Below, in pieces: positions 1-56,724 of a stretch of 64,000 nt of DNA; position 1 is the stretch's first letter; the number at the start of each line of letters is the position of its first letter. Position numbers and translations under genes: made by a program. A model generated the notes under the pieces. That model was not told the origin of the DNA. It saw only the letters and a list, made by a program, of their open reading frames with translations, and did no database searches. The DNA lies in contig NW_027266302.1 in NCBI RefSeq assembly GCF_022045235.1, forward strand, positions 186,001-250,000, read 5' to 3'. Origin of the DNA: Haliotis cracherodii (Eukaryota).

Positions 1-2947
1 AAAAGTGTAAGTGTTGAATAGGTGAATATGCAGACCACGCAGGTTAATGAAGCATTCTCTGCACCACGCATCCAGTCATCAGACCTGGCTCATGCACCAG
101 AGACCTCGCCAATAAAATGGCGCTGTTCAGTGCATGGGGCAAGAATAAGTCAGCTTTATCTACAACTCCCGAGTACAAAGAGCGTGTGTGGCTGCTTGTG
201 TCTTCCCCACAAGCATCTGCAGAATCTATCATTGACAAAAGAGTACTTTATTACACCGTTTTTCACTCCCTATCTCCACGATCTATTTGATATCACAGCC
301 ATAGTTTGCTTATCAGTGTTTTGTTTTTTTATTTCTCACCTGTGAAGAGTGTGACTACCTGTACATTTGTACTTCTTCTAGACACAAGCCTATTCAGGGC
401 TGGTGTTCTCCACAACCAGATTTTTCTCTAACCCTTCCTAAGTGGCCCACCCAGGAAAGATCAGCTTTTAAATGTGCATTATCTTTATTTCTGTTTTGCC
501 TGCACCAATCTGAACTATCCCTACAGCATTGTCAGTAAACAAGAGTTTCTAAAATCAAATTAAATTCCTCCTTTTTGTAGACTTACAAAAAAATGCCTAC
601 ACTATAGCAGTGATGTGCCAATTTTCACAAAGTATGTTAGTGTTAGACTCTCAATTAACTATACTTGGAAACACAAAACACTTAAGTATTACCAGGTCTG
701 TTGAGTGGGCTTTGCATCGTGAAATCAAGTATTTTATGTACAGTGTTAGTAAGGTAATACCACAGTCTGCTGTACTTGACTCATACTAGCACCTGTAGTC
801 TGTACTCTGAGGTAAAACTGTACTGCAATGACACACTAAAAACACGAAACTATGGAGTCTGTAGTCTGTACTCTGAGGTATACGATCATCTTAGCTAGTG
901 CAACGATTGCTATGTGGAACGGGGCCCAGTACAGGTGAGCCAGAAATAAAAATCATGAATAAGGGGTTTTCACACACAACATCTTCAAGAAGTTGCAATC
1001 CAAATGAAATGGAATAGATTTCCAAGCTCTCAACCTTTCTAAAGTTTGAGCAAGTGAAGCCGACCCTTTCGAAAATCCATGTTTAGGTTATCTCCCTGAA
1101 ACCTATCTGTCTCTTATTGGAATTGGCTCCAGCTGAGAGACACATATTATCTTACACTCCAACACAATGTTTTATCAAGAACCTTTCCTGGAGTCATTTA
1201 GATGGTCCCCATTCTACAGCAGCCCTTGGATCTATCTCTGTATTGCTTCAACCCTCTGTCACTGTCTAATGACAAATATGCTATTACTCTGCCAGTTCCA
1301 GACTGATGGAAACCATTGGCGCCATGACATATCTACTGTATTCTCAGATCTTTAAAAAATCCATTACATAATATCAATAGTTTTTCTCCATATTGCCTCC
1401 ACTGCAATTTCTATTTGTTAGAATGGTTTTATGTGTAGTTGGAGACTAATTTGAAGGATTCTGGACAGTGTTTTACAGAGAGGGATGGAATTCTACACAT
1501 TTGATTGATGACTCTGCTCCCAGTACAAGATTTTTGATGCAATATTGCCAGAATGACTCAGATTTATTTAAAGGTTTCAAAAAATCTTTCAAAAGCCTCC
1601 TTAAATTACCATAAAGTTTCTTTGATATTAAAACATTTTATTCAAGCTTATACTGATATACTGTCATTGCAAGATAGGTTGTGTGATCTGCAGATAAATT
1701 GTCTGATCGTGTGTGTGTCATATTGAGTTCATAAAACAATAGGTTTTTGTAGATACACAAAGTTGATTTAAATCAGTGTGATACACACATTACTGTAATA
1801 TTCTTGTTTTGATCCATACTTAGTAAATAACTACAGAGAAGAAGCAGTATCTTCTATAGAGACTATCATGTGATGGTTATAGTGTGACTATCACTTTAAC
1901 AATGATAGATTGTGACATCCTGTACCAGGTTACGTGACATCACTAAGGCACCGACCATTTGATATTCTGGGAGGGCTGTGGTTTTGTATCAAGATCTGTT
2001 GTTTTCAGCTACAGGTATTTTTGTATTTAAAATTATGAGCCTAGTTTATTTTACAAAAAATACCTATGGTATATAATTTTGTGGCAGTCAATTTCATTTT
2101 TTCCAACAGTCATGAGTACAGGTGAGCTATGTAGGGGTTTTAGTGACTCATATCTTGAATCCCCGATGAATAACAAGCTGATATAGTTCATGATATGCTG
2201 ATCTACTGTAGGATATACTGATCATGTGAAACGATAAACATCATCTTGGTAGAAATTCTTTATCCTTTTATGTTGTCCCAAATGAAATATTGACATGCAT
2301 GTTTACCAGATGCAAAAACAAACATTTAAATAAGAAAAGTATTTGCATGGGAAGAAATAGTTATTTGTCTGGCAATATTCCCAAGATAATACTTTCTTGA
2401 AATGATTCCCTGGTTAATCTCTTATGTGCATGATTACAAGGATGACAAGAAAATGGTAAACGTTACAATATATAATAAAAAGGAATATTTCAAATTACAG
2501 TGATCCTAGGAAGAAAATAATTACATCATTAACAAAACATAACATTTACAAATGTAGCATAATTACAACTGGATAACTTTACATAAGCTAATGAAACTCA
2601 AGATTTTTTTATTATTTCCACTAATAACGCACCTGCCTGGAAATCAGGTTATTATTTTTGTGTCAAATTGTATCTATGTGTAAAAAATATCAATACTGAC
2701 ATCTCCAAGATAATTGGATCATAAAAATACTCCCTTATCCATTACCTATTTTTTGAAACATAGATATATCCATTAGGGTAAGCATGAATACTACAGCCAT
2801 TAAAACCATCCTTCATTACGTTCCACTGATGGAGCGAGCTTTATTACTTCAGACAGGTAAGAAAATTGAAAACATGCCTTGAAACACATTAACATAACAT
2901 TTTCTACTTTATTAGTTTTGATGTAAAAATTTAGTGAAAAACTGTTC

Positions 2948-32244: not shown

Positions 32245-32630
32245 TAAGGAAGCGAATATATGGATGTCAACTTCTTTATTATGAAGAACACAACGTTTTG
32301 GAGCATATGCTTACTCCTTCATCAGGGAGGCTAATTAAGGAAGAGAATATATGGATGTCAACTTCTTTATTATGAGGAACACAACGTTTTGGAGCATATG
32401 CTTACTCCTTCATCAGGGAGGCTAATTAAGGAAGAGAATATATGGATGTCAACTTCTTTATTATGAGGAACACAATGTTTCGGAGTATATGCTTACTGCT
32501 TCATCAGGGAGGCTACCACCTGATGAAGGAGTAAGCATATACTCCAAAACGTTGTGTTCCTCATAATAATGAAGTTGACCTCCATATATTCTCTACCTTA
32601 TGTGCATCACTTCTAAATGCCTTTCAAAGA
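32245..32630. mobile_element. Penelope-like (pseudo-LTR) remnant: three 91-bp tandem copies on minus plus one inverted copy on plus, each with a minimal hammerhead motif
   Basis: Units start at 32245, 32336 and 32427; inverted copy 32519-32600 plus a 30-bp tail. CTGATGA-A-GGAGTA-agcata-TRCTCC-(G/A)AAAC(G/A)TT core, AATAAA downstream. TSD cctgcat(a/g)tta at 32233-32243 and 32631-32641. Confidence 0.8.
32517..32556 (+). ncRNA. Minimal type I hammerhead ribozyme motif (G12->A, probably inactive copy)
   Basis: Stem I CAC/GTG, core CTGATGA, 6-bp stem II GGAGTA/TACTCC, AAAA in place of GAAA (GAAA is retained in the minus copy at 32477-32481), palindromic stem III AACGTT, GUU cleavage triplet. Confidence 0.7.
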
Positions 32631-50362: not shown

Positions 50363-51533
50363 CTTTATGCAATGAGGTCTGTTTCTATGAGGGTTTAATT
50401 AAATCACTTCAGCTATTTTGTTTTCTTATACTTCTACATGTTGTAACCTGATTAGAATCTCAACAAAGCAAGATGTAAAACAACTCAACAGAACTCTCGA
50501 CACCATTTATGGAACTTACAAACTCCAGACAATTTGACACTGACAAACTGGCAGTAATCCCCGATCAGACCGTGTGCCATGTTACTGCATAGCAAGTAGC
50601 CTCCTCCAGCAGCAAAACAAGCATGTGAGCTACAAAATGTCTGTCTCAAACACGGCCAAACATGTCACGGCAATATGCAGAATTCAAACAAGACCCTCAG
50701 GGCTAATACAGTCTGCATCACAGTAACAGGTTCCATGACAGGACATGATCATAATTGAGTTGCAGCCTTTTTAAATGTCACCGATGCAACCGCGGAGGAC
50801 AGGTCCATTTAATCAAACGATTGGCGGTTGTGTAATCAGACGCACACTTCATGATAGGAATACTTGACAAAAACAGCTCATGTGGATGGTTCCTGGCCAT
50901 ATTGGCCGAGATGGGCTGTGCTATTAGCATACCCAGATCTGGTTCCTGGACATATTGGCTGGCATCTAGTGTGGCATTAGCATGCCTGGATCCCTTCTGT
51001 ACATATACTTCCCAACTTCAAACTAAGTAACTGTCTTCTCCAAATTCGTTTCATCGCCTGACAAAGGTATCAAGGGGATGATGTAATTCAGTGATGGCGG
51101 CACTGTCGTTCAGTGCTTACACACTTTATTGGTTGTATCAAAGGAAGAAAGTCTTGGCTCAGTGGATGAAAGTCCTCATTCCATGGCATCTTCCCTTAGG
51201 TTCTACATATCTATATGCAGGTTCCTGCATAACTTGAAAGCCTGCCTAAGGGTAACCACCACTTGTAGGATCTATCCAGTCTAACCATCTCGTCTGGAGA
51301 GAAGTGTTTGGCTTCCAGATATTATGACATGTCTTTTCCCGAACACCTTGTTTTATCACTGATTTTCACTGGTCCATTCATGTAATTTCCACATCTATTG
51401 ACCTTTATACCAAGTGGAATTTGTTGCGGCAGTTAATCTCTTGCATTGACAATTTATATTCCTATCACATGTTCTTGTCAAGTCATATTGATGAAGTCTT
51501 CATTACTAATGGGGTATTGATCAATTTATATAT

Positions 51534-51949
51534 TGTAACTAATGTTATATTTGGGATAACACTTTCTTAGTAAAGTACAGATTCTAGTACTTTTTTGGGT
51601 TGAGTCCCGTCCAGGATTCGAACCCACACCTGCCAGGGTGAGGCACCTTATCGCCAGCACACAAAGTCAGCGATCTAACCCACTCAGCCACCGAGGCTTC
51701 CACAAAAATGGAAGTCCGACAACTGGTAGTCTAGATCACGTACTTTGAGTACCCACCCGACAAGTGCAAATTGGCACGGCTCCCATGGCCGAAAGCTATG
51801 AATACACAATGCCATTTAGAAAGTGGTCAAATGTAACTAATGTTATATTTGGGATAACACTTTCCAAGTGTTATAACACTTTCCAAGTGTTATCCCAAAT
51901 ATAACATTAGTTACATTTGACCACTTTCTAAATGGCATTGTGTATTCAT
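51534..51949. mobile_element. tRNA-headed element with permuted 298-bp monomer and 65-bp terminal inverted duplication (Penelope-like insertion architecture)
   Basis: Direct repeat at 51534 and 51832. Minus-strand A box TGGCTGAGTGG and B box GGTTCGAATCC (51603-51697). Perfect inverted arms 51798-51862 and 51885-51949. TSD attta(t/c)atattg at 51524-51535 and 51951-51962. Confidence 0.7.
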
Positions 51950-53671
51950 TATTTACATATTGCTGTTTGTCACCTACCCAAATGGTATTCATGCCCTTTA
52001 CCCTTGTGACCATCCAATCTACATTTTACTTGCTCCTTGTGGACAGAACTCCCAACAACGACGACTACATGGCTTTGTTCAATTTAGATCCATCAATTCC
52101 TATATTCTCTAGAAGAACATTTTTAAAAAAGGAAGAAAAGAAATTTCTTAATAACTTTTTTAGGTTAAGCTATAAAACTGAACTACAAAAACTCTATGAT
52201 TCATAATCATAAATGAAAAGTGGCAACCTCATTTAACCTCTTTTCAGAAAACTCACATTCATTAATATAATTTGCTTATAATAACTTTTAATATGTTCAT
52301 GAATTACTAATTCAGAATTAAAAACATAAAATAATTTCTTCATACAAAGTTTTTCCTACTCAACAGGTGTAATACTTTTCCCCTGACACAGTTAACGGAA
52401 TACTTATATCTACATTTAAATACATGTAGTATGAATTATCAGTGCCCCTTTCAAAACATAATTACCCGATACACAAGAAAGTAAATAAGCACAAATAATT
52501 TACTACCACAATATTCCATATTTACAAAATGGTATTAGTATGAGGTCTGAGTTGTAAGGACAAGAACAAACTAATTACAATGGAACATCTGCTTTCTATA
52601 CACCTCAACATGGGAACTTGCCTTCAAAGAAAACACATGGTAATATGACTGTGAAATATGGACTTTGATTGACAAGGGCTTTTTCTAATAAACAGATACA
52701 CAAACACTGAAATAAGATAGCTAAAGAGGAAATGAAGTTGTGCCTCCATCACACACTCTCCATAAACCAGCAGAGTGGGTCATATAATATAGGTAGTCAT
52801 TACCCTGTTCACCTGGGCTGACTCGCCTCGACAGGGGGGGCAATTACCATGTCCAGAGAGCTCTGCGTATCAGGTAAGGGACATTTACTGGGGGTATTTA
52901 TAGGCGTGATGAAATGGAATAATTCCCCACCGGACATTGGGCAGGGACTTGTAATTTATTCCACTGCTCCCATGATTAAGTCTGTTAAGTGCCATGGGAC
53001 GCCATGAAACATTATACTTACATCTGACCGACAAACTTTTCAGACCCATATGTGAAAGAACATTGGATTTGGTTTATGAAAAGTTATTGAAGCTAAGTCT
53101 TAAATGATAGACCATGACAGTGAAGCGTATCCCATCAGAACCCAGAACCACCCAAACCGATTACCCCCCACGACCAAACACACCCACTAACCCTTGTGGG
53201 TTATCATGTTGTTGTAAGTCTTTCAACACTTGGAGAGTGTTCTACACAATAACACTTAACACATTTCAACTGCATAGTCAGCTGACCTACATATGCGCTA
53301 CCTGTTATTAGAATCAGAACAATACATCTAATAAATCAACTCACAGGAACTACACCTGAACCTCAGTGATGGTTACAGGCTGTCGGAGATCTATTTACTT
53401 GGTTCACCTATACATTTGGGTAAATGATATGGATGACCATCATGAAGAATATATGGTGAAAAACTAGAAAAAGATATAGTTAACATGAGACAGTATTGAT
53501 CAGCATAATTGTAAAATCGATAAACAGGTTTAGGTGAAGTACATCCTCATGCTGATCCAGAAAAAGGGGCATTGACAACAGATGTTGTTCAATGAGGATG
53601 CCAGTGATATGTTGCCATTGACTGCATCATCATGATAGCATAGTGTCATTATTCAAACTGATCATACTCTG

Positions 53672-54052: not shown

Positions 54053-55365
54053 CCTCACCACCATCATCCAGGATTTACCCATGTCTATGTATTTTTTAGT
54101 TTTGTTGACCCACAGTAATAATTTTCGGGAGTTCAAGGCATGAAAACTGGGGTGCCAGAGTTACTGAGGTAATAACAACAATTAAACTAAAAGGTATTTG
54201 TGAAGCATTACTCTAATAATAGTTGGAGATTTCATTGGTTTAAATTGCTTGAAATGAAACTCAGTGATGTAACTGGATGAAGAAAATCAGACAGTCAGTG
54301 TGAAGTATGTCAGTGTTAGTGTTCTCTTATTAGAATAGAATAGTAAATATCTATTAATGATTCAAACAGCCATACCTTGTTTGCATCCATGGGACTTGCA
54401 ATACTAATTATTGGTGTATATTCTCAATATGTATACATAATATGCACCACAGTGAACTGTTCCTGATTTAACATGATATGTATGTTTCAGACATAAATAT
54501 TTCATTTTCAGATGTATTATGTAAAAGCTTTTGGTATTTTGTACAATCCCAGTTACAAATATACATTAATAGGATGTGAAGAGTTCGAAATGGAGGAACT
54601 TCAGGCCTCCTGTACAGAGGTCTTCCACACATGTTTGAGGTGCTTCTACACCCAAAAACACAACTATTAATTTAAGGTATTTAAGCAAAAACAACTATTT
54701 AATAAGCTATTTTTTCAGACTACATGAACATGGCAGGTAGCCAACAATTCTACCATTAAATCTGCAGAGCTTTGATGTCCAATATGAACACTATGTCACA
54801 TTTCATCATCTCAAGAAATACCTCTTCACCAATTTCCTGTTGTTAATGACTTGAAAGAGAGAAACTACTCGGGCAAATCCCACCAGAAATACCTGAAGAG
54901 CTCTTTATTGCCTTCCGATGTGTGGCCATTCATTAAGTGACACTGTATACTTTCCCCCCATCCACTGAATGGCTGCAGCCAATGGGACAGCACATAACAC
55001 CATGCAAGGTGTTCACGCCTCAAATAACTACAATAGTTCATGAATGGAATGGAGATTTACAACTTGTCAGGAATCTGGCCTTTGACTTTCAGTGTGAAAC
55101 TCTATGGGTCAATGAAAGGTATACGATGAGACCTATGGCTAAATATAACCATGATGAAAGGAGCTGCCTTGTAAAACACAGATCATCTACATGACTGGAG
55201 CAATTGGCTGACAAGAGGGGTGGGACGTTGTATATGCTTGTTACCTTGGGACGTTGTGTAGGATTTCTCACCTCACATACTTCCGAGGAAATCAGGATTG
55301 AAATATTGCTGGCAATGTGGAATTCAATTCACTCTTATGGTCATAAAATCAGTCATCAATATTCA

Positions 55366-55487
55366 GGTTGGAAATGGTATTTTGATAACATATTTAAAGG
55401 TTGGAAATGGTATTTTGATAACATATTTAAAGGATGGAAATGGCATTTTGATAACATATTTAAAGGTTGGAAATGGTATTTTGATCA
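55366..55487. repeat. Tandem repeat, 33-bp unit, ~3.7 copies
   Basis: aggttggaaatggtattttgataacatatttaa. Confidence 0.9.
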
Positions 55488-55928
55488 AATGTTTTGAGGT
55501 AATAAATATGAACACATGATAACACATCTACCTATAAGGCTGCATCGATAGCTTTATCAGGGCACATCGCCATGAATGTATTACATGTTTGAATAATGAA
55601 ATACAAATGATAGGATATTCTTGAATGGACAATGTCTTTCAGAAAGTGGTCCAATGTAACATGTTAGTGAATTCTTGAATACAGTTTAAAGCAATGTAAT
55701 GGATTCAAATGACAAAAGAAGAAACAGTTTTTCCACTTTGATCGAGATCAAACATTCTATATGGGGACTTATTTGAGATCAACAACCTTTGCATTCAGCC
55801 ATACATGTTTACTGAGAAACATATGGCTTCATGCAGAGTTAAAATTCTTATCAAGCAAGTGCTTCCTGTGGATCTGACTTCACACCATACGTTTAGTGTT
55901 TCAAGATATATTGTATTCCAAATATATA

Positions 55929-56049
55929 CTACTCAAAAGAAGTTAAAGAACACCTGATTGTTTATATAACTATAGTTAATCTGTCATGACATGAAAGATT
56001 AATTATAGTCACATGTAAAAATCAGGCGTCCTTTACTTCTTTAGAGCAG
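55929..56049. mobile_element. Tc1/mariner-type MITE (~120 bp)
   Basis: Imperfect ~30-bp TIRs ctactcaaaagaagttaaagaacacctgatt and aatcaggcgtcctttacttctttagagcag, flanked by TA. A related left half is at ~8459-8520. Confidence 0.7.
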
Positions 56050-56175: not shown

Positions 56176-56724
56176 CAGGGGTGAAACGATACAGCAAGGT
56201 CACGATACGATACATATAATGTCTCATAGGTCACGATACGATACATATAATGTCTAATAGGTCACGATACGATACATATAATGTCTCATAGGTCATGATA
56301 CATATAATGTCTCATAGGTCACGATACGATACATATAATGTCTCATAGGTCACGATGCGATACATATAATGTCTTATAGGTCACGATACGATATGCATCA
56401 CAACACACATTTACGTCAAATCGCATGGAAACTTCTTGACAATAAATATTTCAGAGCAAGTTCAAAAGGAAAAGCTAGCTGTAGACACACGTTCATAGCA
56501 GCTATTTTCAGCAGTGAAACACTAATTACCAAACATTTTGCAATATCTGACTGGCAATTTTTTAAGTGGTCATGTGAGGAGTCATTAAACGAGTAGTAAG
56601 TAGATTACTTAGCATGTGTATCGTCTTGTATCGATACAGATAAAAACGTATATCTTGTATCGTATTGTCACATGACAACATGTCCCATGATGCACCAGGG
56701 CACCGACATATCGTTTCACCCCTA
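56176..56724. mobile_element. hAT-type MITE with internal 31-bp tandem array
   Basis: TIR (C/T)AGGGGTGAAACGATA, 8-bp TSD gtga(g/a)agg at 56168-56175 and 56725-56732. CGATAC/GTATCG subterminal motifs; 31-bp repeats at 56197-56395. Confidence 0.85.

Follow-up and report, generated by a model that had tools for sequence, protein, structure and literature searches.

The window studied here is a stretch of 64,000 nucleotides (nt) of Haliotis cracherodii DNA (assembly GCF_022045235.1, contig NW_027266302.1, positions 186,001–250,000 of the forward strand). On its minus strand, at 51534–51949, it carries an insertion built from a 298-nt unit with a tRNA-like head. The first-pass annotation had proposed that this insertion is not a standard short interspersed element (SINE) primed by a long interspersed element (LINE), and that it was inserted in the Penelope way. 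We compared 47 independent insertions of the same unit, and it turned out that they have two fixed 3' ends, tandem units, inverted arms and target-site duplications (TSDs) that enclose the whole composite. Thus, the observation is confirmed, and its reading as a SINE-like element with a head for RNA polymerase III (Pol III) that is inserted in the manner of Penelope is supported. The family is probably a non-autonomous retroposon that combines a tRNA-derived Pol III head with mobilisation of the type used by Penelope-like elements (PLEs). We attribute the mobilisation to PLEs because the anatomy of the copies shows the published hallmarks of these elements, LINE-type ends are absent, and the genome contains open reading frames (ORFs) with both a reverse transcriptase (RT) and a GIY-YIG endonuclease. 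The enzyme would then be a PLE protein, and Pol III would drive transcription of the master copies, judging by their sequence.

Direct-repeat analysis shows 1.1 tandem copies of the unit in the window, as annotated before: the segments 51534–51571 and 51832–51869 are repeated at a spacing of 298. We numbered the unit from the first base of the tRNA-like head (window position 51697), in the tRNA sense. The features of the window copy are collected in Table 1. The main arm ends at position 164 of the unit (window 51534), which is the start site giving no tail, and the outward 3' end of the inverted arm is position 198, the start site giving a tail. The 34-nt stretch between the internal cluster at 51794–51801 and position 164 corresponds to the optional tail. 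The inverted arm is 100% complementary to 51798–51862 over all of its 65 nt, and the perfect 65-bp inverted duplication described earlier is real. The 12-bp TSD also exists, but it is not perfect. Neither a microsatellite nor an A-rich tail was found at the window copy, in agreement with the earlier statement that the microsatellite tail of the ordinary SINEs of this region is missing here. A 19-bp tandem duplication at 51854–51893, partly within the inter-arm junction, forms a small flip-flop that had been overlooked. In one independent run, contigs span the outer junctions on either side of the window copy, and no empty-site allele was seen in the contigs of public runs.

Table 1. Features of the 298-nt element copy in the window (window coordinates)
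Feature	Position	Strand	Remarks
TSD, left copy, ATTTATATATTG	51524–51535		last 2 nt overlap the element end
TSD, right copy, ATTTACATATTG	51951–51962		11/12 match to the left copy
Main (direct) arm	51534–51864	minus	unit positions 132–298, then 1–164; BLAST to the monomer
tRNA-like head	51602–51697	minus	96 nt; ARAGORN call
T5-loop hairpin, CTTCCA-TTTTTG-TGGAAG	51697–51714	minus	AAAAA at 51704–51708 on the plus strand
Long imperfect RNA hairpin, predicted	51626–51767	minus	positions 229–292 pair with 293–298 and 1–72
Second 3'-end (reverse-transcription start) cluster	51794–51801	minus	positions 195–202; internal to the main arm in the window copy
Inter-arm junction	51865–51884		20 nt; palindromic site near monomer position 134
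Inverted 5'-truncated arm	51885–51949	plus	monomer positions 134–198
GGC-n7-GCC-GAAAGCTA motif	51778–51798	plus	antisense to the element RNA

To describe the family, the 1.18-Gb assembly from which the window is taken was searched. The first look gave 3,470 candidates. A 48-nt head pattern had 1,131 matches at no more than 2 mismatches, and the reversed-pattern control had none. The architecture was determined in 47 independent insertions, namely the 27 best BLAST hits and 20 further ones taken in list order from the exact head matches. A head at the start and a simple tail at the end are not the rule among the copies. Instead, the outward 3' ends fall into two clusters that lie 34–36 nt apart: 27 of 55 are at positions 161–168 (…TTAGTTACA/T) and 28 of 55 at positions 195–202 (…GTATTCAT/A). 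One-armed insertions end at either of the two sites. The contigs of four public runs break repeatedly at the corresponding window positions, 51534 and 51795–51799, and beyond the latter breaks the letters are AT-rich and share no consensus. A LINE tail, poly(A), or an A-rich or microsatellite 3' end is absent from the copies.

The 5' ends of the arms (n = 72) behave differently. They are scattered over the unit, with 56 of them within positions 1–135. There is a hot spot at positions 84–89, just 3' of the T-arm (9/72; scan permutation p = 0.003), and six more ends lie at the head start. In the window, positions 84–89 are equivalent to 51609–51614 and positions 293–1 to 51697–51703. The clustering of 5' ends could be caused by stalling of the RT at the folded or modified tRNA-like domain, or by processed 5' ends of the RNA. 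More than half of the arms (41/72) are longer than one monomer, and the longest contains 3.6 units.

An inverted second arm is present in 25 of the 47 insertions. The inversion in the window is thus not unique to this locus, and it is not an assembly artefact, since contigs bridge its junctions and the same arrangement recurs at dozens of loci. Of the 47 insertions, 28 have a flanking direct duplication of 9 bp or more, and in 21 it is 11 bp or more; the TSDs range from 7 to 14 bp. They always surround the whole composite and never a single arm. A/T makes up about 77% of the 8 nt next to the insertions, compared with 60% in the background. The two arms of one insertion do not use the 3' sites at random. 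Both ends lie at the usual sites in 13 two-armed insertions, and in all 13 there is one end of each class; none has two ends of the same class. If the ends were drawn independently from two equally frequent classes, the probability of such a result would be about 1e-4.

Identity among the units or between the opposite arms of one insertion is 98.3–100% (99.7% between the opposite arms at locus L020), and identity between insertions is 92–96%. Identity within insertions exceeds identity between them; therefore, each composite represents one event from one source. Insertions with several monomer junctions share one variant of the T-run described below, both arms included, and L027 is the sole exception.

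We compared this architecture with what has been published on PLEs. The known hallmarks of PLE insertions are 5' truncation, partial tandems called pseudo-LTRs (LTR, long terminal repeat), an adjacent inverted 5'-truncated copy, and a tail of 30–40 bp that is often present at one end only (Craig et al. 2021, PMC8557442). The inverted truncated copy adjoins the upstream end (PMC8557442). In vitro, the PLE protein PAc from Anolis cleaves both DNA strands at AT-rich sites and extends them (Frangieh et al. 2024, PMC11167929). It starts reverse transcription from two adjacent internal sites of the RNA, and the sequence between them is the tail (PMC11167929). The 298-nt family displays a fixed 3' end with variable 5' truncation, pseudo-LTR tandems, an inverted copy and a tail. 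The genome contains ORFs in which an RVT_1 domain is joined to a GIY-YIG domain at the C-terminus, and none lies within the 298-nt element.

A second locus of the same window has the same arrangement. At 32245–32600, a hammerhead-type Penelope relic consists of three tandem 91-nt units and one inverted 82-nt arm, and the layout of the 298-nt element does mirror that of this locus, as had been noted. The 91-nt unit has no Rfam hammerhead match at E<=1, and its sequence is related neither to the 298-nt monomer nor to the 30 PLE loci described below.

We then considered the tRNA-like head. The first-pass annotation was right to place a promoter-bearing tRNA-like head on the minus strand, in mid-element: ARAGORN calls the head, and both the A box (TGGCTGAGTGG, 51680–51690) and the B box (GGTTCGAATCC, 51614–51624) fit the Pol III type-2 consensus. 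The head is of class II with a long variable region, and ARAGORN labels it as tRNA-Thr(TGT)-like. Rfam made no tRNA call on it, either in the gathering scan of the whole window or in the E-value scan of 51400–52100. Because the Rfam tRNA threshold is not reached, we regard the head as tRNA-derived and not as a tRNA gene. The hairpin reported before, with T5 in its loop, adjoins the head on its 5' side. This T5 is the sole run of at least four T on the sense strand of the monomer, and the hairpin is a candidate Pol III terminator just upstream of the head. From the promoter and terminator consensus alone we infer that the family may be transcribed by Pol III.

If the T5 hairpin acts as a terminator, a transcript would run for one monomer and stop before the next head, as the first-pass annotation suggested. 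The placement of T5 agrees with this suggestion, but the insertions run through T5. The T-run is kept at all 38 monomer junctions that were recovered from the first 28 insertions (T5 in 26, T4 in 4, T6 in 5, interrupted in 3), and these junctions are uniform and have no extra nucleotides. The T-run is retained at the junctions; therefore, the reverse-transcribed template read through the presumed terminator and was longer than one monomer. A simple Pol III RNA of one monomer is insufficient as a template, unless this RNA is closed on itself. The copies do not discriminate between a circular and a tandem RNA template.

The RNA of the element is predicted to be highly structured. The 331-nt sense RNA folds far better than shuffled controls (z = -6.1). 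Its long hairpin is predicted to contain 54 bp, 12 of them G.U, and to be capped by the T5 loop. The predicted stability is -73.6 kcal/mol for the sense strand and -49.6 kcal/mol for the antisense strand; the sense fold is much stronger because of the 12 G.U pairs. Covariation gives one compensatory pair only, between subfamilies, because the family is too young for such a test. The upstream arm of the hairpin looks like a fossil inverted copy of the 5' half of the head, produced by the same head-to-head style of insertion. In an RNA of unit length (positions 293..292), a panhandle is predicted in which 5' GUGGAAG pairs with 3' CUUCCA beside the U-run.

Several observations weigh against mobilisation of a Pol III-headed unit by PLEs. 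The first concerns the partner. Candidate partners were sought among the GIY-YIG (PF01541) loci of the genome that were confirmed as PLEs with RT and endonuclease; the resulting 30 loci form 5 nucleotide clusters, and Naiad-type PLEs are outside this sample. Alignment of the 3' tail to autonomous PLEs, recommended in the first-pass annotation, gave no similarity: within the sampled clusters, no shared sequence was found by BLAST (word size 7, E<=1), by motif scans, or with an nhmmer profile built from body and tail. As a rule, published non-autonomous PLEs have 3' ends in common with their partner. Moreover, the commonest PLE family of the genome has a canonical hammerhead and chooses (TA)n microsatellites as its target, and the 298-nt family has neither feature. 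The second concerns transcription. T5 is copied within insertions, which would not be expected if Pol III terminates there efficiently, and neither starts nor ends of transcripts can be read from the contigs of the public runs, whose status as RNA is guessed. Finally, the sample is biased, since 27 of the 47 insertions were picked for likeness to the window copy and 20 by an exact head match.

In nine loci of this commonest PLE family, which has an RT and a C-terminal endonuclease and whose copies end in (TA)n (L033, L039, L041, L043, L044, L052, L053, L054 and L056), a canonical hammerhead core (CTGATGAG…helix II…GAAA) lies about 120–180 nt downstream of the GIY-YIG ORF. In the literature, a hammerhead is located in the pseudo-LTR of the canonical endonuclease-bearing PLE clades, and Naiads are devoid of it (PMC8557442).

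The data on genomic copies suggest the following scheme of insertion by a PLE protein. Body positions ~130–200 would serve as the 3' recognition and start region for PLE RT and GIY-YIG endonuclease supplied in trans. The copies themselves show that reverse transcription starts at one of two internal sites, ~162–165 or ~198–200, and that the complementary DNA (cDNA) extends 5'-ward to a variable distance, usually across the head and the T5 hairpin and on into the monomer before it. About half of the events include another cDNA, made on a near-identical template, in inverted orientation, from the other side of the staggered break. One arm of such two-armed insertions comes from the tail-less site and the other from the tail-bearing site. 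The product is a head-to-head composite with one TSD of 7–14 bp in moderately AT-rich DNA. The origin of multimeric cDNAs is more speculative. A unit-length Pol III RNA reaching from just after one T5 to the next could form the 54-bp panhandle with its ends side by side. Ligation of this panhandle to a circle, or template switching from end to end, might then give multimers. Alternatively, they might arise by plain read-through of genomic tandem copies.

Among the other explanations, a retrozyme-like route survives best, although we consider it unlikely. It assumes that the multimers arise in the course of reverse transcription and are not encoded in RNA: a unit-length or circular RNA, made by Pol III or processed by RNase P/Z, would be ligated or bridged at its panhandle and reverse-transcribed by the rolling-circle mode. 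Such a route would refine the explanation given above, and a PLE enzyme could still do the copying. The predicted panhandle with paired 5' and 3' ends is in accord with it, as are the 98–100% identity of monomers within an insertion, the single T-run variant shared by both arms in every insertion with several junctions except L027, and the 5' ends of arms located at the head start (6/72; L099 begins exactly at GTGGAA after the T-run). However, if a homogeneous tandem in the genome were read through, its monomers would be just as identical. The junctions are uniform and lack the untemplated nucleotides that are usual for template jumps, and no ribozyme was found on the monomer. Template switching between the ends of Pol III RNA was also tried as the source of the junctions and rejected, because there are no extra nucleotides and, L027 excepted, there is one T-run variant per insertion; nothing favours it.

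The ribozyme question was addressed separately. The motif GGC-n7-GCC-GAAAGCTA had been read by the first-pass annotation as half of a hammerhead that lacks CTGANGA. The motif is there, and CTGANGA was found on neither strand of the monomer, but the hint at a ribozyme did not hold: the motif is on the strand antisense to the element RNA and has no match in Rfam, and we rejected it as a ribozyme. An Rfam scan of 51400–52100 revealed no hammerhead or other ribozyme at E<=10, and the gathering scan of the whole window had no matches. The E-value matches that did appear in 51400–52100 are spurious hairpins of microRNAs and small RNAs, caused by the inverted repeat.

It is also very improbable that the family is an ordinary tRNA SINE mobilised by LINEs and rearranged later by tandem duplication, unequal crossing-over or local inversion, or that it is a small satellite. 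The size of the unit and its tRNA-like head with A and B boxes are those of a SINE, and some loci (L003 and L029) contain 3–4 monomers. The head fragments within a minisatellite at L093 also speak for such an origin. However, the copies end at two fixed internal positions and not at a LINE-type, A-rich or microsatellite tail, and the TSDs enclose the entire composite of tandem and inverted parts. Later rearrangement also accounts poorly for the pairing of a tail-less with a tail-bearing end in 13 of 13 cases and for an identity that is far higher within insertions than between them. An origin at the DNA level, as a miniature inverted-repeat transposable element (MITE) or a foldback transposon, is extremely unlikely: perfect terminal inverted repeats of 31 nt (51534–51564 and 51885–51915) and a 12-bp TSD are present at the window copy, but a terminal inverted repeat defined by a transposase would be constant, whereas 22 of the 47 insertions have no inverted arm, the inner arm ends vary, and there is a 34-nt difference between the outer ends of the two sides.

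Two groups of loci deserve a separate description. At L093 (G000:C1:86633500-86634750), head fragments covering positions 1–55 are located at 891–941 and 1147–1201, about 256 nt apart, in a GAT-rich tandem array. Apparently, a piece of the element was amplified there as part of a satellite. L089 and L090 (G000:C1:67638800-67640050 and 67644820-67646070) contain the same complex composite with identical flanks about 6 kb apart, which is a local segmental duplication later than the insertion.

The boldest form of the PLE explanation is that this would be the first class of SINEs parasitising PLEs rather than LINEs, in which a unit-length Pol III RNA, closed on itself by the 54-bp panhandle or ligated to a circle, would be copied round and round by PLE RT from two fixed internal sites. 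The tRNA promoter and the terminator hairpin would replace the hammerhead of retrozymes, and the strict pairing of ends would report an intrinsic asymmetry of the dimeric PLE integration complex. We put this forward as a speculative proposal that is rather unlikely to be right.

The family also has older members. At 55612–55711 of the window, on the minus strand, there is a 5'-truncated relic of about 100 nt that consists of body and tail only and has ATTCAAGAAT on both sides (nhmmer E = 1e-18). Its tail is 83% identical, and it belongs to an older subfamily. A 47-nt tail match at 55.6 kb had been considered as the tail of a partner PLE; this was rejected, since the match turned out to be the relic just described. 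Eleven similar tails were found elsewhere in the genome, and the two that were fetched (L101 and L102) are full older copies with 72–77% identity. The order of upstream arm, T-run, head, body and tail is kept in the older copies, with L101 and L102 giving the full layout. In runs labelled as four other organisms, the share of 31-nt words of the query is close to the element's own share. This suggests that four related species carry the family but not this locus.

Other repeats lie near the relic. The segment 55921–56057, together with the first ~50 nt of 55911–55960 (minus strand), forms an inverted repeat with 68-nt arms that are 74% complementary. The end of this repeat is present in many copies (571 first-look candidates, many of them 100% matches of 38–40 nt) and is probably the terminus of a MITE. 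Two minisatellites are located at 55365–55529 (33-nt unit, ~5 copies) and 56178–56415 (31/26-nt unit, ~8 copies).

By definition, SINEs are transcribed by Pol III and parasitise LINEs. A high-copy family in which a tRNA-type Pol III head is joined to a PLE-type start region would broaden the concept of a SINE so that it includes a third class of retroelement enzymes. The short non-autonomous derivatives of PLEs described in the literature consulted rely on hammerhead ribozymes or on the ends of their partner. The 298-nt unit also offers a compact natural template for the poorly understood integration of PLEs, with start sites mapped to within a few nucleotides and with abundant products of the tandem-plus-inverted type. 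The rule of one tail and one tail-less end had no exception among 13 cases, and models of two-strand priming have to meet it quantitatively. In genome annotation, such copies will be mistaken for MITEs, satellites or rearranged SINEs.

The literature on short non-autonomous PLE derivatives covers hammerhead retrozymes, MRC1-type elements and short Penelope elements of butterflies. In the literature searched, none of the described derivatives has a tRNA-like Pol III head, and no description of an element that has a tRNA or Pol III head and inserts in the PLE manner was found, which is not proof of absence. The defining feature of retrozymes is a hammerhead; it excises the monomers, and these are subsequently circularised (Cervera and de la Pena 2020, cited in PMC8557442; Li, Clavereau and Pollet 2026, preprint, doi 10.64898/2026.07.22.740005). 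The 298-nt family resembles MRC1 and these non-LTR retrozymes of animals in its short non-coding tandem units, whose mobilisation is attributed to PLE proteins acting in trans. Unlike retrozymes, it has no hammerhead ribozyme. Non-autonomous Chlamys elements of the MRC1 type share their 3' ends with an autonomous partner (PMC8557442), and this is not seen for the 298-nt family.

Like SINE2/tRNA SINEs, the family is headed by a tRNA derivative with A and B boxes, measures about 300 nt, runs to thousands of copies, and has TSDs and subfamilies. Unlike LINE-mobilised SINEs, it lacks a LINE, poly(A) or microsatellite 3' end, its head is in the middle of the copy, copies comprise more than one unit and inverted arms, and there are two alternative 3' ends 34 nt apart. 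A more distant parallel is provided by the Cassandra elements of plants, which are terminal-repeat retrotransposons in miniature (TRIMs) with a Pol III module of 5S ribosomal RNA inside each LTR. The likeness is conceptual, namely a Pol III module placed in the terminal repeat of a non-autonomous element that relies on a non-LINE enzyme. Cassandra belongs to another kingdom, its promoter is of the 5S and not of the tRNA type, and its machinery is the integrase and RT of LTR retrotransposons.

The comparison with PLEs themselves (the Penelope/Poseidon, Neptune, Nematis and Naiad/Chlamys clades) shows both differences and the closest agreement in the way of insertion. Unlike PLEs, the 298-nt unit contains neither an ORF nor a hammerhead, every unit carries a tRNA-like Pol III promoter, and there is no detectable sequence similarity to the 30 sampled PLE copies. 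Like PLEs, the family shows 5' truncation, pseudo-LTR tandems and an inverted truncated copy. It inserts into AT-rich targets with short TSDs, uses both sides of the break, and carries between its two start sites an optional tail of 34–36 nt, where PLEs have one of 30–40 nt.

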